A stretch of 64,000 bases of DNA. Source: Diplonema japonicum (taxonomy: Eukaryota; Protista; Euglenozoa: Diplonemea). Positions 43,634-62,209 of the stretch are shown in pieces. Where the stretch lies: positions 558,001 through 622,000 of the forward strand of contig OZ025648.1 of NCBI GenBank assembly GCA_964019335.1, read 5' to 3'. A program made the position numbers and the translations under genes. Position 1 is the stretch's first letter, and every line of letters begins with the position of its first letter. A model generated the notes under the pieces. The model did no database searches. It had not been told where the DNA came from and saw nothing but the letters and a program-made list of their open reading frames with translations.

Positions 43634-46298
43634 CTACGATTTCTTCTCCATAGTCTTCGCTGCTTCCTGCGACACAAACCCTTTGACTCTCATGGCCACC
43701 TCCACGGAACCGCTGACCTCCCCTCTCTTCTCCTCTCCCACGACTGGGTGTGACTGGATGGTGGCCTTCCCACCGCTGTTCAAGTTTGGCACGATATCTG
43801 TAAGGACAAGGTCTACCCTTCCTTTGTACTCTTTTCCAATTGTCTGTTTGTATTGTATTTTGATTTGCGCTTCAGATCCGAAAAGTGTCTGATCACCGCC
43901 TGCAAAATGACATCTTAATATAAAATTGCTTTTTCTAGGGCTGGAATGTAAAAACGACCGGGGGCCAATGAGTGTCATGTGGTATTCTAGAAAACACTTT
44001 TTTTTGATTTCCTCCATGTAACCCTTTGGGGTCTAAATTGGAAAAAATGGAGATGGAGGGCATCGATCCCTCTACCTCTCGCATGCTAAGCGAGCGCTCT
44101 ACCATTTGAGCTACACCCCCTGACAATTTTCGTTTTAATAATAATAATTATTCCACTACCAGGCGGGGGGGATGGGGGGCGGAGAAAGTTGAAACCATAA
44201 AAATTGGGAAGGGAAGGTTAAAAACAGTCTCTCTTACTGAGCCATATCGGGGGGGACCTCTTGCTCGTTTGCTCGACCTCTTGTATATTTTCCTGGGGCC
44301 CCCGACATCCACCTTTCTTATTTTTTCCCCATTCCCCCGCCACGCAGCTCTTGGGCCTCGAAGGCTTCGGCTGTCACCAAATAAAGACAACCCCAAATTT
44401 CGTAGCTTTTTTTATATTCCCCTGACAATTTTCGTAGCCGAGATTTAGTCGAATCCTGATCTTTCTCAACAAGCGGATAACAAATCAACCAAGGCTTGAC
44501 CCAATGTTTTTAGTGAAATCAAAAATGCCTTTACTTTTTTAATTTAAACCCCTTCGACCCCATCCAAGCTTGCAAACCTTTGAGCCAAAGATACTGATCC
44601 TGATGCAATCGGCTGGAGGAACTACTAACCGCAACTTATGATCAAAACTGTGGTGGAAGTTAATTTGGTCGTTAGGACATACTGTGGGCTCAGTTCACCC
44701 TTGACGGTTTTAGTAACGGATTTTTGGGCGTTGGGGTGGCTGCTGCCAACTACACCGTCGGTCACAGTTCGGAGTTTAACCTTCGTGGTTGTTGTCATTA
44801 GTTTGTGTTTGGCATACCTCGCAGAAGATGTTCTTTGAGCTGCCCGGGTTGAGGTTCTTGGCACCCACAAGGCACATGTCAATGATGAGCTGGTTTGCAG
44901 TCTTCATGGCCTGCGTCACTTGCTCCTTTGCCCTGCGCTTTCTCTCCTCTTTCACCTTCTCGAGGTCCTGGTTCAGTTCATCAGCTGACAGCGGGGCTTC
45001 GACGACCATCTGGAATTCAAGAAGCCCTTCTTGGCGCAACTGATTCACCGCTTCCACAAGGGACTCCTTGTCAACGATTGTCACCCCATTCACATCGCGA
45101 ATTACAGAGGCGGACTTCATGCCTGCACGTTCGCAGGCACCGTTGGAGGTGAGCTCAATGGCACGCACTTTGTTGCCGACAGCGATCAGCCCATGGATCC
45201 CAAGGTTCTCTTCTTTGTCATTGCGCTTCACTGTGAGCACTTGCGACAGTGCCTCTTCGTGCTTCTCCACGTCTTTTATAGCCCCGGCATCTTCGTCCTC
45301 AGACTCTTCCCCTCTCGCTATGGCTTCAAGCTCTTTGGCCTCAGCCTCGGCTTGCGCGAGCTTCTTGTCCGCCTCTTCTCTTTCTTTTTGTCTCAATCTT
45401 TCTTGCTCTTCCCTTTCTCTTTTCTGCTGTTCCAACACCACTTTCATCATTTCCTGTGCATCATTCAGTGCCTCAACACGTTTAAGGGCAGCTTCGGCTG
45501 CTTCTTTCTCTGCCTTGGCGCGCGCCTTCGCCTCTCTCTCAGCCTGCTCCGCTGCTTCTTTTGCTGCTCTGGCCTCTTCCATCCTCTTTGCAGCTGCCTC
45601 TGACTCTACTTGGTCGGCAGCTTCACGCTCCTTTTGGGCGGCCTCAGCCGCTGCCAGAGCCTTTGCTGCAGCTTCCTGCGCAATCCTCGCTTCTTCTTCC
45701 GCCTTCTTCGCCTCAGCCTCTTTCCTGGCGGCATCCCTCTTCTTTTCTGCTGCTGCTTCTTCCTGTCTTTTTTGCTGCTCCTCCTGGGCCTTCCTTTCGG
45801 CTTCTTCTTTAATCTTTCGCTGCACTTCCTCTTCCTCGCGTCTTTTCTTCTCCTCGGCAAGCCTCTCTTTTTCTCTTCTTTTTTCTTCTGCCTTTTCTTT
45901 TGCTTCTCTCTCTTGCTCTTTCTTTAGCTCTTCGAGTCGTCTGAGCTGTATAGAGAAAAAAAAAGAAAAGAATCAGTTTTTTTTTGGTTTTTTCTTACTT
46001 TTTTTAATTTGCATTCTGCATACATTGGCGTCAAGGTCTAAGTCGTTCACATCGCCTTCCCCACCTGCTTTACGGATCTGATCCCCGATGATTCGTTTGA
46101 TCGCACCGATAAAGTCTTCCCCCTCTCCCATTGCCGACCTATTGTGGTGCATGGTGCGCCGTGTGGCATTCTTCTTGATGCATACCAAATCTTGGCAACT
46201 TCTCTTACTTTCAAGGTTTCAATAAATCTGGACACCGCAGGCCCGGGGGGCGCACCTGTCTTCTGAGCATACAGCTCTTTAATCTCCGAGGTCTGCAT
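43634..46298 (-). CDS. Coiled-coil + PDZ-like + C2-domain protein; last intron hosts tRNA-Ala
   Basis: Spliced C2: LVGAKNL..IFCE|VKL...SPH|FDHKLRLVVPPADCIRISIFGSK|TIGKEYKGRVDL. Introns 44781-44817, 44648-44682, 43844-44577, plus two near the 5' end. Confidence 0.8.
44048..44120 (-). tRNA. tRNA-Ala(AGC), intronic
   Basis: GGGGGTGTAGCTCAAATGGTAGAGCGCTCGCTTAGCATGCGAG...CTCCA followed by TTTTTT. Confidence 0.96.
44134..44418 (-). mobile_element. 285-bp 5'-truncated retroelement 3' end ('family A') flanked by a 17-bp TSD
   Basis: CCCCTGACAATTTTCGT at 44117-44133 and 44419-44435; (TTA)n/A tail toward the tRNA; homologous to 60193-60485. Confidence 0.75.
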
Positions 46299-48918: not shown

Positions 48919-51248
48919 CTAAAGTATAGGGTCTTCCATGCTTTGCCTTGCCAATTGCTTTGCCTATTATTTTATTTTTAGTTGTCTCGGCCACCCATTA
49001 ATACCTTTTTTCTCCAGTATTTCTGGTTTTCAGGCGTGGATGAGAAGCAAAGCTCAGCCGCCTCAAGATTAACCTGTGGAGTGGAAAAGAAAAATAATAA
49101 TAAGGGGAACCCCATTAATTCTTTTTCGACAATACCCAAGTGGCTGTAGATGGATTAGGTTCTGATGAGAGTAGTTTTCTGATGCTAGAGAAGATGTAGT
49201 CGATGGACTCTTGTTTGGTAGGCGGGATCGAGAAGCAAGGGTGACCAGAGGGGCTGATGTTGGGGTGGAACATCTTTGTCTTGAAGCAGACGCGCGGGTA
49301 CTCGTCCCTAGACTCCGGGAAGACGATCTCCACGTTGAACATGCCTTCCTCAAGCAAGCCCTCAGGCTGCATGATGGACAGGTTCCAGACGAACACGTTG
49401 TCAGGGTCAATGGGCCCACCCGAGCACCCGTGCATCCCGTCCTGCAAGAGCCTTGCATGTTCGTCTCTCAGTGTGCTTGCCAGGTACGACTTCCTCTTTG
49501 TCAGCTCAGCCCCCTTCTGTTTCCACATCTCCGTTTCCTCCTGCAACTGCTTGTTAATCTTGTGCAACCTCTCCAGCACAGACGTGTAGTCAAACTTCCC
49601 CTCTGACAGGTTTGTCGGGTATTCAAAAGGTGTTTTTTCAAAACTCTGTCCGTCCTTCACAATTCCCTTTTCAGCTATCGCTGTGTACGTCTCGTATCTC
49701 ATCAGAAACTCCCGCTTGATCTCAGGCTTGAAATACTCGGTTTTCCCGCTCAACACGTTTTCCAGCACATCGCACACCGCCACTCGGAGTGATTCATGTT
49801 GGATTTTTTCACTGTAAGCTGCCGCCTCCTCTCTCACACGTTCGGGATCCCGTCGCCTTTTCTTCACAGCCCCCTGTGTCCCTGCTGGCTGTGAACCCGT
49901 TGCTGGATTCCTGTATTAAGTTAATACGGTAAAAAAAGTTCCGGCACGGGGAATTGAACCCCGGTCTCCTGGGTGAGGGCCAGGTGTTCTAACCACTATA
50001 CTATGCCGGATTACGGATTATGCTCGTGGACTCGACGAGCAGAAGATCTGGTGGGTCGGGCTAGATGAGGGCAATGTTGGTGTTGGCATGGGTGACACAT
50101 TGCATGTGACAGGAGTCACGACGTGGCAGTGGTGAGGTGGTGGTGGATGTGTTGCTGGTGAGCAAAGAGTAAAAAAACGAAAATGCGAAATGTTTCGTGT
50201 TTGGTGGAAAAATGAAATTAGGTTTCAACCAGGAAATTTTGGTATGGTTTACAGGAAACGGCGGAAAAATGGGTTTCCTCCATCCCAAGGTCAAAGGAGA
50301 GCTTAGCTTAGTGGTTTCCTCGTTAACATAATGGTTCATGTGCATTCCCTAAGAGAATGATATCCCGGTTCGATTCCAGGACGAATTTAAAACCACTGGT
50401 GCAATCTCTCTTTTTTAAGGGGATTTACACTTATTTAAATAGGCCAATTGGTGCCTTTCGGATTTGGCTTCGATTACTGATCCTGTGTATTTTGGCTTCT
50501 GCATACTTCCCGGCTTTGAGAAGTTTTGTGCAGGAGCTACCTGCCAAGCTAAAAAATACAACACAATATTTATACCAGTTCCCACGTAAAAAAACATTTA
50601 ATGCCGGACGAAAAACGTTCGGGTTTCTGTCGCGTCCGGGAGTTTGTCCGTCCGGCATTTTTTGGAAAATTTTATTTGCATACAAGCTCGCTTCTGTTTT
50701 TTCGTCATCGCTTTCTGCCTCCATCTCCAATATTTCTTTCTCAAAACCTGGCTCGTTGTGGTACGGCTCACAGTTCATGATTAAACTTTGTATCGCGTTC
50801 AGGACGTAGCCAACGGAGTAGGCACTCCTCCATATCTCCGACGTCTCCCCCCTCCATGTTCCAAGAATCGAAAGGCAGACCTAGTGTGGATGGTGCATTA
50901 TTTTCTCACTCTCTCGGAAATACCTTGCCATCGGCATATAAATTGGGATTGAACCTCACCCTGCCATAGTCAGTTGTTGAGATTTTAACCTGTTGCGTTT
51001 ATTATTGAAAACTTTCCCTGAAACAAACACACCTTGGGGGGGTCGTTGGGGTACGTCTGGGGGAACCTCATGTCAAAGGAGTAAAACCCAAAATGGTACG
51101 GTGTCTGCGGTGGGCCCACCATCATGGCTACAACGTGGTCCAGCTTGTCTTCAACACACGTCACATAAATAGGAGGACTATCTGTGTTGGGGCTCTGCAT
51201 GACCTCCTTCAGGTCTTTCTGAACCCTAAAGGCGCACGAATTCGCCAT
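48919..51248 (-). CDS. UBE2Z-like ubiquitin-conjugating enzyme with a second UBC-like domain, 5 introns; long intron hosts tRNA-Glu
   Basis: [18 protein letters not shown]|[26 protein letters not shown]; second domain with [14 protein letters not shown]; ends [14 protein letters not shown]. Long intron at 49911-50683. Confidence 0.85.
49939..50010 (-). tRNA. tRNA-Glu(CTC), intronic
   Basis: TCCGGCATAGTATAGTGGTTAGAACACCTGG-CCCTCAC-CCAGGAGACCGGGGTTCAATTCCCCGTGCCGGAA followed by a 7-T run. Confidence 0.93.
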
Positions 51249-57335: not shown

Positions 57336-58670
57336 TCACAGTGCTTTCCGGAGGAGGGAATACGAGCGGAATAGAAGAATGGCCGACGACAGGGCGCATC
57401 CGGCTATACCAAGTGCAGCACCCGAAGTAGCCAAGTCACTCATGAAACCTAGAACGAGGGGTGCAATGAGGAGAGTAAGATCGCCTGATTGGCGTTGGAG
57501 GGACAAGGATTGTCCGCGTTTTTCTTCAGGTGCGTGATCAATAGAGAGGACAGAGAGGACTGCAGTCAACGTTGCCTCACCCACCTCCCATATAAGGAGG
57601 CCCGTGAAAAACTGCCAATAGGTTTGCGCCACACACAGAATCACACACCCAAGGCCATTAAGTACCGTACCTACTAGCATGACAGGCAGCCTCCCGAATT
57701 TATCCGAAGCCCATCCTGCAACAACTATACCAACCAGCCCTATACCTGATGCTGCCGAGTACATGAGGCCCAATTGAATTGGATCAGCACCCCATACATA
57801 TACGGCATGCAGTGGCAGCAATGTTAAGTACGACGCCCACCCAATGTGCAACGCCACGTTTGCTATTACGAGCGCACGCTGTTCCTTGGCTTTCCACAGC
57901 TGTTTCCATTCAGCCAAAGCTGATGTTTTATCTTCGGATTGTTTTGCTTTTACTTTCAACGTCTCCGGGAGTGTGTAAAAGGCAGCCGTTGTGAGAAGTG
58001 TCACGGCTGAAAAGGCATAGAATGGGCCTTTGGTACCTAAGAAGCCTGCCAGAAGGCCACCAATCGAAGGACCCATTACATAAGAAATCGAAGAAATTCC
58101 ACCGATCACTCCCACTAGTATCCCTCTGTGTTGTGGGTATGGTGCAGCAATATCGGCCATGTAAGCTGATGTGCCGCCAGCTGATGCAGCTGCACCGATG
58201 CCTAACGTGAGTCTAGCAGCAAATAGAGTTGCGATGTTTGGAGCCACAGCAGTGAAGAGAATTCCAGCAGCAGTTAAAATCTGACCCCAAATCAGCAGCG
58301 GACGGCGCCCTCTCGTGTCTGCGTACTTCCCAACAGGCATGTTTGAAACCACTTTCCCAAGAGCAGCAGCACTGATGATAGCACCTACGCCTGTGGCACC
58401 CAGTTCAAATTCTTCTGCAATGGAAGGGAGAAACGGTACAACCATTCCAATACCGGCTGATTCGATTCCTTCGCACACAGCGATAACGCCAAAACCCCAT
58501 CTTGTCGTCTTTCCACACGCCTTCCACGCATCTCTGATACCTTTAAATGATACTTTTTCATCATTTTTCACTTCTTTTTTGACTTGACTTTGCCATCGAG
58601 TTTGTTGCAAGTGTTTTGTGTGGATCTTCGCCCCACCCCTGCACAAACTCCATGCTGGTTTCCTCCACAT
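57336..58670 (-). CDS. MFS transporter (DHA1-like) with basic N-terminal extension
   Basis: GKYADTRGRR and GWASDKFGR motif A copies; about 12 TMs. Confidence 0.9.
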   Translation of the reverse strand: MWRKPAWSLCRGGAKIHTKHLQQTRWQSQVKKEVKNDEKVSFKGIRDAWKACGKTTRWGFGVIAVCEGIESAGIGMVVPFLPSIAEEFELGATGVGAIISAAALGKVVSNMPVGKYADTRGRRPLLIWGQILTAAGILFTAVAPNIATLFAARLTLGIGAAASAGGTSAYMADIAAPYPQHRGILVGVIGGISSISYVMGPSIGGLLAGFLGTKGPFYAFSAVTLLTTAAFYTLPETLKVKAKQSEDKTSALAEWKQLWKAKEQRALVIANVALHIGWASYLTLLPLHAVYVWGADPIQLGLMYSAASGIGLVGIVVAGWASDKFGRLPVMLVGTVLNGLGCVILCVAQTYWQFFTGLLIWEVGEATLTAVLSVLSIDHAPEEKRGQSLSLQRQSGDLTLLIAPLVLGFMSDLATSGAALGIAGCALSSAILLFRSYSLLRKAL

Positions 58671-58688: not shown

Positions 58689-58771
58689 TCCTCTCGGCCG
58701 GAATCGAACCAGCGGCCGCGCGATGGCTACTATTCTACAGTCGCGCGCTCTACCAATTGAGCTACGAGAGG
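58689..58771 (-). tRNA. tRNA-Tyr(GTA) with 10-nt intron (58725-58734)
   Basis: CCTCTCGTAGCTCAATTGGTAGAGCGCGCGACTGTAG[AATAGTAGCC]ATCGCG...GGTTCGATTCCGGCCGAGAGGA. Confidence 0.95.
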
Positions 58772-58780
58772 CTTACATTT

Positions 58781-59040
58781 TTTTGCAATAATAACCACTG
58801 GGGGAAACTGGGTGTGGGGTGTGTCCAGTCTTTTGTCTGGAGTAACCGAGAGGGCCACCACATGGGCTGAACCTTCCCTTTGGTGCTCCGTTCCCCCTTC
58901 CTGGGACAGCCACCTGGCTGATTACATTCGGGGCGGTCCCCTCGAGGCTGAACGCAGGGGCGTTCTCTTTGCGCCCTGCGCCCTCCCGGCCTTCCCTGTG
59001 GCTGCCTCCCGGGAGGTTGTTTCTTGGCCCATTTGCGTGT

Positions 59041-59073
<33 letters not shown>

Positions 59074-60174
59074 GGGGACAAAGGGGTAGGGGGGGGGGTC
59101 TATAATGGGCTCACGATCACCCTTGTGCTGCGTCGGCCGGGGGGAAGATCCCACACTCAGACCATGATAAGAGCCCGGAGGCCTCGATGAAGGCGCAGAC
59201 CTCGGCGGAGTGCTTGGAAAGCAGCGCGCGGAGCGGCAGCCCAGTGTCGTAGAAGGACTTAGCTGTGGGAGCCAGAGAATGACAGCCCCTCAGCAGGTCA
59301 TCAGCGTCGAGCGGTGATTGAACGTTGCAGGCGGGGCAGGTGAGGTGATGACTCCCCTCAGCCCTCAGGGGTCCCTTGAGCTGGAGGTACCCCCTCATCA
59401 AAGGCGTGTGTCCGGTCCGGAGCCGAATGATCAGGACCTCATCCCTCCTACTGAGTGGTGAGAGAGAGAGACATTCGCCACCGGTGACGAGGCGGTGGTG
59501 GCCGGGGGAGTCGCTGTTGTATCTCGCACGCGACCTTCCTCTCAGCCACGCTTTTATGGCCGCCTTGCTGGAGCGGTAGCTAACCCCGCAAGGCGACTTC
59601 GACAGCCCGTCCCTGGCCGCTCCGTCGGCGAGCTCGTTCCCCGTCACACCGCAGTGGGAGGGGATGTACCAGAAGTGCACATCACCAGAGCGTTTGGCCC
59701 TGAGCCAGGAAGCGGCATCCCAGATCCGTCTGTCCGTGGACTCCCTCTGCTGTCCGGGGCCTCCAGCGAGCCTCCGCAGCATCGTCTGTGAGTCGGTCAG
59801 CAAGTAGAGAGGGCGGCCCCTCAGGTTCACGACCGTTTTGTACACCTCCGCAGCCTCCTTCAACCCCATCAGGATAGCGGTGCCCTCGGCGCACATGGGT
59901 GTGGAGACCATGCCGGCCCCGTGAGAGGTGGTAAGGGTGAGGTCCATGTCGGGGACTCTGAGGGCAACCCAGCTCCCCCTCTCCCCCTTATCACCGAGCC
60001 GTCCGTGTACACTACCAGAGCGCCGCTTGGGATCTCGTCCAGCTTTTCCGCAGCCGCTGCCGCCCTCACATCGTCGGGGAGTGTCCTCCTGGTGTCGGTG
60101 GCGTAGGGATCGACGTGGATGCCTTCCGCCCAGGGGGGGGGGGGGGGGGGGGGGGGCTCTCGTATCAGGCCCTT
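58781..60174 (-). mobile_element. 5'-truncated non-LTR retrotransposon (ingi/I-clade-like RNase H + 3' end) flanked by a 16-bp TSD
   Basis: RNase H motifs VYTDGS / (frameshift) / AEGTAI, LTDSQT, YIPSHCGVTGNELAD, then RLRTGH...CPAC. TSD CGAGAGGCTTACATTT at 58765-58780 and 60175-60190. Confidence 0.9.
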
Positions 60175-60190
60175 CGAGAGGCTTACATTT

Positions 60191-60900
60191 CGTTCACTAC
60201 CAGGTGGGAGGATCGAAGGGGAGTAGAGAAAACAATTCAAGGGAAAGGGGAAAGGGACATCACTTCAAACCAAGAAGAGTGTTTGAAAAGTGATTTGTGA
60301 AAAGCAATCTCTGTTACTGAGCCATTGGTCGAGGGGTCCTGGTCCGCTGCTCCCTGTAGTTCATTACTTGGACCCCCTCACCACGCTCTTTTCATAATAA
60401 AATAAAACCGATCCCACCCACCAGGCAGCACCTGGGTTTCGAGGCATTAGCCGCCTCCTGAAACAAGAGACGACCTCCCAGATTTTAAGAACCTTGGTGG
60501 AGTTTCAATTGTGAATAAATTAACCAGCTGACTGTGAAACTCCACCGTCTGCTGGACTTGTTGGGCTTTCGGGAGCCAAAATTCAATTCATTTAAGAACT
60601 CGAGTTAAATAATGACTCATTATTTGTTGGCAATAAATAGCTATTTTTTTCCCAAGATAAAAGACTTCAAATCAAGCTCGATCGTGTACACCAAAACTTG
60701 ACCTTTCTGCCTTTTTTCTTTTTCTTTTTTTTTTTTGAAAGGTGAGTGAAAAGTTCGAATTAGGTGCAGCCCCAGCTCTATGGCCCTTTGCTCGCACCTG
60801 TAGGATGACGTATAGGATCCACCGCTGACCCCATACGAAGCTTTTCTCTCCCCTCGCAACAGGGGGCGGCTTGACGGTCGGGTGGTCCGCGTCACGGAGG
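60191..60900 (-). mobile_element. Older decayed retroelement ('family A' 3' end plus RNase H remnant)
   Basis: 60193-60485 is colinear with 44151-44400; SSYRCEQRAIELGL near 60760-60860 resembles the RNase H helix. Distal boundary uncertain. Confidence 0.6.
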
Positions 60901-61199
60901 CAGCTGAAATGGATGAAGAAGCGAAGAAATAGATAAAAAGGGGTGGGAAAGAATAAATACTGCATACGAAAACAGAGAGTCGAGTAAAAAAGGGAAAAGG
61001 TGACTGACATCCTCAAGAGGAGCCTCCCACGTACCAGGAATTAAGCAGAGGTTGCTTCCATGGCCCGTATCAGTCTATCGCCAGAAAGAATAATGAAAAT
61101 AACATAACAAAGAGAAGGGGGGAAGAAACGGAAAAAGACGGCTTGGTCATCAGAGAATGTTGACCCAAATGCGCAGACAAGGCGCCCCCCAAGGAGCCA

Positions 61200-62209
61200 C
61201 GTCCTGGACTTCGGGGGCGGGCTGTCGACGACGATGAAGAAGACGAGTTGCCTCGTGCCCTGGAACATCGTCTGCATGCGCCGCAGGACGGAGGATGGTT
61301 TCCACCCGATGTGGTCCAGGGTCTACGTCGTCCGCATCATGCAGCCATCCCCGGACCGGCGCAGGACGGCGTGGACGTGTGCCGCTTGCAGGCGCAGTCC
61401 CACCTCGTGGGTCCAGTGCCTCGCCCGCGGTTCCTCCTCACTGAACTTCCTCGGGCGGAAGATCGCACGATCCTCCACCACCGCGCCCTGAGCCTCGACG
61501 AGCTCCAGGACCCTGGCCTTCGCCTCCTTCAGGCTGTCTGCACTGACACAGACGTAGACGACCTGCTGTCGAAGGTAGAGGGCGGGGTGTAGGTGGGGGG
61601 GTCCAGCCCGAACGTGGAGACGTGGACCCTCTTGTTCACTGCGCGCGACCCAGAGACCATGACGACCTCGCTGGGGGTGGTGGCGCCGGGGATCTCTGTC
61701 ATGAGGACAAAGGTGAGGGATGCCGTAGGCATCGCGGAGTACACGACCCCCATTCCGGAGGGATCGTCGAGCGCAATGACGGCGCAGGATGCCTCCGTTG
61801 GGGGGGGCACGTTGGTGTAGACCGGGGCGTCCCATGTGTCTGGGACCAGGTCCCATCGCGGGGCTGTTGCAGGGGCAGGGGCAGGGTCGTCCGCCTCCAT
61901 CTCCTCAGGGCCAGAGCCAGTGTCTGAGTCCGAGCTGAGGAGGAGCGTGCCTAGGTCTGTCGCGACTGTTTCGTCCTCGACCTTCTGGGCAGCTGCCTCC
62001 TTGGCGGCCACCATCCTCAAGGCTTCATCCTTCTCAGCGGCGGCGGCTGCGGCCTGCCTCTCCGTTTCCCTCTCGGCGGCGGCGGCGGCTTTCTTCCTCT
62101 TCTCGGCGGCGGCGGCAGCGGCTTTCTTCTTCTCGGCGGCGGCGGCGGCTGTAGCCTCCATCTCCTCGGCAGCCTTCATCGCGGCCGCAGCACGCGCTTT
62201 CTCGGCCAC
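61200..62209 (-). pseudogene. GC-rich disrupted ORF with Ala/Glu/Lys repeats, possibly retroelement-associated
   Basis: Coding-like sequence switches frame (61529-62209 to 61323-61856) and continues past a TAG. Confidence 0.4.

Follow-up and report, generated by a model that had tools for sequence, protein, structure and literature searches.

Why should the tail of a truncated retrotransposon point at the start of an intact tRNA-Tyr gene, and why should the repeat that flanks the insertion copy the first seven nucleotides of that gene? This question is raised by one locus in a 64,000-nucleotide stretch of the Diplonema japonicum genome (assembly GCA_964019335.1, contig OZ025648.1, positions 558,001 to 622,000; the whole stretch is called the window below). 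We think it very probable that the copy was inserted by target-primed reverse transcription, by a recently active family of long interspersed nuclear elements (LINEs) that is position-specific for the 5′ boundary of genes transcribed by RNA polymerase III (Pol III). We call this family tail-1. In the list below, ORF stands for open reading frame, UTR for untranslated region, APE for apurinic/apyrimidinic endonuclease and RT for reverse transcriptase; coordinates are those of the window.

58689-58771, minus strand: intact tRNA-Tyr(GTA) gene with a 10-nt intron, the target gene (ARAGORN with introns allowed)
58765-58780: target-site duplication, tRNA-proximal copy, CGAGAGGCTTACATTT on the plus strand, covering tRNA-Tyr +7 to -9
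58781-60174, minus strand: 5′-truncated, inactive APE/RT/RNase H LINE copy of the tail-1 family, 1394 bp, comprising the last ~340 codons of ORF2 and the 3′ UTR
58781-58801, minus strand: 3′ terminal motif CCAGTGGTTATTATTGCAAAA plus a short A-run, the family signature used for mapping copies
59046-59098, minus strand: 3′ UTR tract, C20-22 then (CA)n in the element sense (alignment with sisters)
59117-60132, minus strand: ORF2 remnant with RNase H domain and CCHC knuckle (Pfam RNase_H, 22.7 bits on the fragment)
59282-59338, minus strand: CCHC knuckle of the ORF2 remnant
59615-59641, minus strand: RNase H catalytic motif NELAD of the ORF2 remnant
59786-59803, minus strand: RNase H catalytic motif TDS of the ORF2 remnant
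59876-59896, minus strand: RNase H catalytic E of the ORF2 remnant
59995-60015, minus strand: RNase H catalytic motif YTDGS of the ORF2 remnant
60133-60156, minus strand: homopolymer run, G24 (C24 in the element sense), against C8-9 in three aligned sister copies
60175-60190: target-site duplication, distal copy, CGAGAGGCTTACATTT, a perfect 16-bp match to the proximal copy

Read on the minus strand, the locus consists of the duplication, the 1394-bp element ending ...GGTTATTATTGCAAAA, and the duplication again, running into the intact tRNA-Tyr gene. On this strand the duplication is AAATGTAAG followed by CCTCTCG, the latter copying nt 1-7 of tRNA-Tyr. The plus-strand form CGAGAGGCTTACATTT occurs exactly twice in the window, with 0 occurrences expected over 100 shuffles, and a repeat search extends the match to 19 nt with one mismatch. 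Because the first three A of the duplication are inseparable from the poly(A) tail, its unambiguous part is 13 bp. The tail itself reads ...GGTTATTATTGCAAAA(A), ending TTATTATTGCAAAA(A), and points at tRNA-Tyr. The 5′ junction has a single extra A, at 60174, and then AG microhomology with tRNA-Tyr +9/+10; an extra base and microhomology are usual at this junction in truncated LINE insertions. The original prediction, made from the letters of the window, had described a 1394-bp truncated element within a perfect 16-bp repeat spanning tRNA positions -9 to +7, co-oriented with a tRNA that stays intact and with its tail towards it. The coordinates of the two duplication copies, the shuffles, the minus-strand sequence and ARAGORN bear out that description.

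The identity of the target depends on how introns are handled. By default ARAGORN labels 58689-58771 an 83-nt tRNA-Ser(AGA); once introns are allowed it returns tRNA-Tyr(GTA), with the 10-nt intron after position 38. The first 38 nt are the same in 9 of the 9 tRNA-Tyr genes of the genome, and a T-run terminator lies directly downstream of the window gene. When the assembly was searched with the empty-site sequence predicted for this locus, the filled site alone was returned, and no empty allele was seen in Logan contigs, which break inside the multicopy tRNA and at homopolymers.

The inserted copy belongs to a repeated family. Over nearly its full length, the minus-strand 1394-bp insert matches 14 other genomic places at 92-99% identity, most copies at 95-99%, which speaks for recent activity of the family. 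Since these copies extend upstream with mutual homology, the window copy is 5′-truncated. It retains residues 982-1320 of ORF2, as judged by tblastn against an intact ORF2, and alignment with sister copies places a 1-nt deletion near 59967, inside RNase H, that breaks the frame. The C24 run reflects an expansion peculiar to this copy or an error in the homopolymer; Logan contigs break there. The C/CA tract of the 3′ UTR is present in the three aligned sisters and is therefore a family feature, not an artefact of this copy. Truncated, frameshifted and carrying the C24 run, the window copy is dead.

To place the family as a whole, we mapped its 21-nt terminal motif with up to 2 mismatches and obtained the downstream flank for 43 of 43 matches; the reversed control motif had 0 matches in the genome. 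At 15 of these 43 tail-1 3′ ends a co-oriented tRNA gene lies 7-13 nt downstream, all within a 7-nt window (the tRNA begins 8-14 nt after GCAAAA). Once the A-run is removed, the spacer is 3-6 nt at 14 of the 15 and 11 nt at the remaining one. The occupied genes represent 11 amino-acid types (Tyr twice, Cys three times, Ile twice, and Glu, Thr, Pro, Arg, Leu, Asp, Val and Asn once each), and no motif is shared among the spacers and first gene nucleotides of the tRNA-adjacent copies. With 1593 tRNA candidates, a crude upper bound, a random site would fall into such a window with a chance of ~9e-5, which gives 15 of 43 a probability of ~1e-50, so the observed placement is beyond chance expectation. 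The check that the original prediction had named, the distance of all 3′ ends of the family to tRNA +1, thus came out in its favour, with 15 of 43 adjoining co-oriented tRNAs and one scar at a 5S rRNA gene (described below). By eye we also noticed tRNA-like flanks at loci L051, L052 and L057; they have no ARAGORN or Rfam support and were left out of the count.

The duplications place the second end of the insertion site inside the gene. They could be read at eight loci, where they measure 8-18 bp, start at about -5 to -12 and end within the gene at +2 to +8:

tRNA-Tyr (C1, the window): 16 bp, reaching +7
tRNA-Cys (C102): 14 bp, reaching +5
tRNA-Leu (C32): 16 bp, reaching +6
tRNA-Glu (C83): 18 bp, reaching +8
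tRNA-Ile (C44): 11 bp, reaching +6
tRNA-Tyr (C62): 10 bp, reaching +4
tRNA-Lys (C38): reaching +6
tRNA-Val (C55): 8 bp, reaching +2

The motif AAATCCGTAATCCGG is present three times at the tRNA-Glu locus, split by a 50-nt fragment of another element with poly(A) and by the 3.1-kb LINE; as two different inserts separate the three copies, the site was hit in two serial insertions. An unoccupied tRNA-Glu(CTC) gene in the window, at 49938-50019, has the same -9 to -1 spacer, AATCCGTAA, as this occupied gene and differs farther upstream. The common spacer and differing farther flank suggest that the short 5′ flank is part of a duplicated gene unit. At L045 (C15:260222-260420) a family 3′ end and a 6-nt spacer precede a partial tRNA-Asp, whose first 39 nt run through the anticodon before the 5′ end of another repeat takes over. 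Two readings fit this order: a duplication of unusual length, or a tRNA gene that was itself interrupted by a later insertion.

The family has also left its mark at a Pol III gene that is not a tRNA gene:

C52:246942-247060, minus strand: 5S rRNA gene (Rfam)

A tail-1 3′ end at C52:247468 lies 407 nt upstream of this gene, in the same orientation, and its poly(A) is followed by TCAAGGAAGGATACG, which is the sequence from -8 to +7 of the C52 5S gene. At the junction with the gene itself we find the tail of another element, A16, TCAAGGAA and then GGATACGGCC..., which starts at 5S +1; this later insert lies 8 nt from +1. A tail-1 copy therefore once inserted at -8 to +7 of the 5S gene at this single locus, and a later element displaced it. 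The scar favours the Pol III start site, over tRNA sequence, as the recognised feature.

Displacement of this kind appears at other loci too. Most of the 28 tail-1 3′ ends that do not adjoin a tRNA are followed by the 5′ parts of other repeats, and on C36 (6.2 kb), C52 (7.0 kb), C40 and C102 the length of one element separates such copies from a co-oriented tRNA downstream. The junctions beyond non-adjacent copies were checked on four short pieces, and those on C36 and C52 show tails of other LINEs 6 and 4 nt before the tRNA. In the downstream flanks of copies not at tRNAs, no other Pol III RNA was found at the Rfam gathering threshold. The window holds two examples of another family, which we call family C:

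60195-60596, minus strand: family C, a short repeat and older insertion, with 93-95% identity to the L026 and L009 copies and a tail in common with L017
44121-44280, minus strand: family C tail (...GGTAGTGGAATAATTATTATTATTAAAA), ending 12 nt upstream of tRNA-Ala(AGC), 44048-44120

Because a family C 3′ end was at the tRNA-Tyr site before the LINE arrived, family C forms the first layer of a stack there; with family C before the distal duplication and more repeat fragments beyond it to about 62200, tRNA-Tyr carries a stack of ~3.4 kb. Repeated hits on one site by tail-1 and other families build such head-to-tail stacks. The window's tRNA-Val and tRNA-Glu genes are free of insertions, and among 19 incidentally sampled tRNA genes, a sample biased to repeat-rich regions, 10 have the tail of some family 4-11 nt away. 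Run X11, which is labelled as another organism, contains near-identical pieces of the LINE and upstream repeats (59087-61300) and none of the unique flank; given their low depth, these matches may be trace D. japonicum, not a second host.

The other families raise the tentative idea, which we think less likely to be right than wrong, that several retroelements, unrelated or distantly related, are guided to the few-nucleotide window at Pol III gene starts by one and the same host tether, located at the pre-initiation complex of diplonemid Pol III. They would include tail-1, short non-autonomous elements and a second LINE family, tail-2, which lies upstream in locus L031 and has 30% RT identity to tail-1. 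If so, much of the tRNA gene set would now have the AT-rich tails of these elements as its upstream flank and perhaps as part of its promoter context. Transcription by Pol III is unstudied in this lineage, and the insertion scars would map the footprint of its start-site complex at nucleotide resolution.

The coding machinery is best seen in a full-length sister of 6505 bp, which sits before tRNA-Cys at L031 (C102) with a 14-bp duplication. Its ORF1 of 548 aa continues into a 162-aa frame (the two are fused in another copy), and its ORF2 of 1316 aa is open. In this intact ORF2 the Pfam matches are Exo_endo_phos at 77 bits, RVT_1 at 127 bits and RNase_H at 36.5 bits, and a CCHC motif of the form C-x2-C-x9-H-x4-C comes after RNase H. 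In an alignment with ten homologues, endonuclease, RT and RNase H keep their catalytic residues (D/E/D/D in RNase H) without variation, and the C/C/H/C columns are likewise invariant; given this and the Exo_endo_phos match, the endonuclease is of the APE type, not restriction-like. The element had been described as an RNase H-carrying non-LTR (long terminal repeat) retrotransposon, and a full-length copy and the type of its endonuclease had been called for; the sister copy agrees with the description and supplies both. ORF1 has a single Cys-rich (Cys4) FYVE/PHD-like motif, with a weak FYVE match of 20 bits, below the Pfam threshold, and no CCHC knuckles were found in the ORF1 of the sister copy.

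The closest protein to ORF2 is a 1475-aa Diplonema ambulator transcript with 43% identity, which shows that a sister species also has the lineage and transcribes it. The remaining homologues are at most 30% identical and almost all without a name; no named ingi or L1Tc protein is among the best 120, nearly all of which are unnamed. A structure search of the PDB for relatives returned L1 and R2 RTs only. No tRNA was found downstream of 80 metagenome relatives (23-38% identity), most of whose contigs are no longer than the element itself.

The 5′ ends of the longer copies have features of their own. At L031:3540-3665 (C102) and at the L002/L033 5′ junction, the 5′ UTR of full-length copies is made up of three pieces: 36-60 nt identical to the 3′ tail of the tail-2 family (...GCTCTCCATGGCGGCCCTGCATTGGTATTTTG), a long A-run and ACATG. 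The tail-2 piece looks like a tail captured from an upstream neighbour, and it suggests that the master tail-1 copy may be transcribed from within a stack. The three independent copies at L002, L007 and L008 are 5′-truncated within ~15 nt of one ORF2 position (near L031 6935-6948), leaving units of ~3.2 kb; the shared point marks a hot spot for truncation or else a deletion derivative that is being amplified. No ribozyme like that of hepatitis delta virus was found in the full-length copy. A lead of this type, RF02682 at L046 73-192 on the minus strand (C16:474412-474531), was dropped, with 27.6 bits against a threshold of 44; this weak match begins ~8 nt downstream of the family 3′ end, where the next stack member would be expected.

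The standard model of target-primed reverse transcription by APE LINEs allows nick positions to be read from duplications, and on it we base the following sequence of steps. The ORF2 protein, with its APE, RT, RNase H and CCHC parts, would nick the antisense strand at about -3 to -12 of the mature tRNA 5′ end. The T-rich 3′-OH so exposed would prime on the poly(A) of the element and its RNA would be copied, in the window copy for the last 1.4 kb only. The sense strand would then be cut within the gene at +2 to +8 (+7 at the window tRNA-Tyr), and repair would duplicate the 10-18 bp between the nicks, with fill-in leaving the gene intact. Since the targets have no common sequence and include a 5S gene, what positions the element would most likely be the initiation machinery of Pol III (TFIIIB, TFIIIC or the polymerase itself at the start site) and not a DNA motif. 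The original prediction had likewise proposed position-specific integration guided by the Pol III initiation complex. The position specificity stands, on the 15 of 43 copies at tRNA genes and the 5S scar, whereas the tether to the Pol III complex, like the order of the nicks, is what we infer.

How might the same pattern arise otherwise? The position could be read from the DNA itself, if a DNA-binding part of ORF1 or ORF2 bound a conserved element within the gene (the A box, at about +8 to +19, is one candidate) and set the nicks just upstream of it. The second nick does always fall at +2 to +8, immediately 5′ of the A box, and the Cys4 motif of ORF1 is zinc-finger-like, although its FYVE match is sub-threshold. 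Yet the same -8 to +7 scar occurs at the 5S rRNA gene, whose internal control region lies far downstream of +8, and the spacers and first gene nucleotides are without a common motif; we consider this account unlikely. Insertion could instead be random, or biased towards A-rich sequence, with selection in a compact genome keeping the harmless copies beside tRNA genes. The genome is indeed gene-dense, at 62 Mb (PMC13598402), and the duplications begin in A-rich sequence, as they do in ordinary APE LINEs. Selection cannot, however, confine insertions to a window of 7 nt, orient all of them with the gene and make their duplications run into the gene without exception, at 15 genes and among copies that are mostly 95-99% identical to the window copy, and we regard this account as highly improbable. 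Scarcely credible, in our view, is that the repeat and its junctions are an assembly artefact, or that the tRNA was carried along by the element through 3′ transduction. The window copy does contain two long homopolymer runs. Against an artefact stand the assembly itself, made from PacBio HiFi reads with hifiasm and spanning 62.3 Mb (PMC13598402), and the recurrence of the geometry at eight loci, the window and seven others, with different tRNAs and unique flanks; the concern that the 16-bp repeat might be artefactual, voiced beforehand, thus becomes very unlikely. Against transduction, poly(A) stands between element and tRNA, and the tRNA beyond its first few nucleotides is outside the duplicated unit. 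Segmental duplication of tRNA-plus-element units was rejected on the same evidence.

Several observations weigh against insertion targeted to the Pol III start site. The largest body of them is the 28 of 43 tail-1 3′ ends that are not directly at a tRNA. The 3.2-kb copy at L007/L037 (C55:297970-301170) carries an 11-bp duplication, AATTAACAGCC, which is partly present a third time. This copy is ~86 bp away from the 5′ end of a divergent tRNA-Lys and directly upstream of the 5′ end of another repeat, and no co-oriented Pol III gene was detected at its locus. L053 sits 113 nt from tRNA-Gly, and the tRNA 5.7 kb downstream of the C25 copies is without a LINE tail. The 5S case is one locus, and no independent Logan contig bridges the junctions of the window copy, a point that also speaks for an artefact there.

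With these points set beside it, we return to Pol III-directed insertion by tail-1 and ask whether such elements are known. The closest analogue, by architecture and position, is Dp_NLTR-A of Dictyostelium purpureum, a 7.4-kb non-LTR element with RNase H downstream of RT, found 2-6 bp upstream of mature tRNA +1 in 16 copies (PMC5006619). Tail-1 likewise has RNase H downstream of RT (36.5 bits), and its spacer of 3-6 nt in 14 of 15 cases compares with those 2-6 bp; one host is an amoebozoan and the other a euglenozoan, and we liken the two by architecture and position, not by sequence. Dp_NLTR-A is unplaced among RNase H-bearing clades and has few full-length copies in a compact genome, and the terms target-site duplication and TSD are absent from Spaller et al. 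2016 (PMC5006619). Tail-1 goes beyond that description in its duplications to +2 to +8 and in its targeting of a 5S gene as well. The original prediction knew of no ingi/I-like RNase H element that targets tRNA starts; Dp_NLTR-A, at 2-6 bp upstream, is a precedent for an RNase H-bearing non-LTR element there (PMC5006619). Among the dictyostelid TRE elements, TRE5-A targets Pol III genes, including a 5S gene, with involvement of the TFIIIC/TFIIIB complex (PMC3159450, PMC5391098, PMC6101501). Like tail-1, TRE5-A and TRE3 are non-LTR elements of the APE type whose insertions at Pol III genes keep a fixed orientation; TRE5 inserts ~50 bp upstream and TRE3 ~100 bp downstream, whereas tail-1 is found at the gene boundary itself. 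Tail-1 shows the traits of non-LTR elements that target Pol III genes: APE and RT, poly(A), 5′ truncations, variable duplications, a constant distance and orientation at many tRNA types, and use of another Pol III gene (at the single 5S locus).

Other comparisons capture parts of this pattern. Yeast Ty3 and the dictyostelid DGLT-A also insert in a narrow window upstream of Pol III genes (~15 bp for DGLT-A, which is reminiscent of Ty3), but they are LTR elements with an integrase and without target-primed reverse transcription, a poly(A) tail or 5′ truncation. The Tx1-clade Dewa, Utopia, and SLACS/CZAR are LINEs that, like tail-1, use multicopy small-RNA genes as safe sites; they recognise a defined sequence in one gene family, whereas the targets of tail-1 are unrelated in sequence and constant in their gene-start position. 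To our knowledge, Dewa, Utopia and SLACS/CZAR are without RNase H. The ingi and L1Tc elements share with tail-1 a euglenozoan host, the order APE-RT-RNase H-zinc motif and a poly(A) tail. They have one long ORF, a C-terminal motif of the C2H2 type and the Pr77 hallmark at the 5′ end, and they are dispersed. Tail-1, in contrast, is directed to Pol III genes and divides its coding sequence between two ORFs; with these and a C-terminal CCHC motif, the label "ingi-like" in the original prediction is not supported. The order APE, RT, RNase H, CCHC in ORF2 is that of the I clade. An ORF1 with gag-like CCHC knuckles is a further mark of that clade; the ORF1 of tail-1 shows the single Cys-rich motif and no CCHC knuckles; judged by its sequence, the layout of tail-1 ORF2 looks I-like.

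The kind of element is thus already known from Dp_NLTR-A. Its occurrence in diplonemids or other Euglenozoa has no report in the searchable literature, and three diplonemid papers, the D. japonicum genome note among them, do not mention it. The genome paper on Diplonema papillatum lists LINE-1, SLACS, R2 and jockey-like ORFs and has nothing on tRNA targeting. That yeast LTR elements and dictyostelid LINEs both use tRNA genes as safe havens is a textbook example of convergent evolution. Adding a third, independent supergroup (Discoba, here Diplonemea) would strengthen the idea that compact genomes select tRNA-gene targeting, with a LINE at almost the same distance as NLTR-A in D. purpureum. Tail-1 could serve as a natural probe of Pol III start-site complexes in diplonemids, abundant marine protists whose nuclear biology is almost unexplored, and its targeting would explain part of the repeat architecture of D. 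japonicum, the stacks at tRNA and 5S genes, which is unannotated in the genome note.

Two neighbours of occupied tRNA genes complete the description. In the window, the longest ORF of a major facilitator superfamily (MFS) transporter (57336-58670, minus strand; MFS_1, 180 bits) shares its strand with tRNA-Tyr and begins just 18 nt past the 3′ end of that gene. At L012 (C109:9715-10016), a U6 small nuclear RNA (snRNA) gene lies 127 nt downstream of an occupied tRNA-Asp and is co-oriented with it, a tandem arrangement unlike the divergent tRNA/snRNA arrangement of trypanosomatids.

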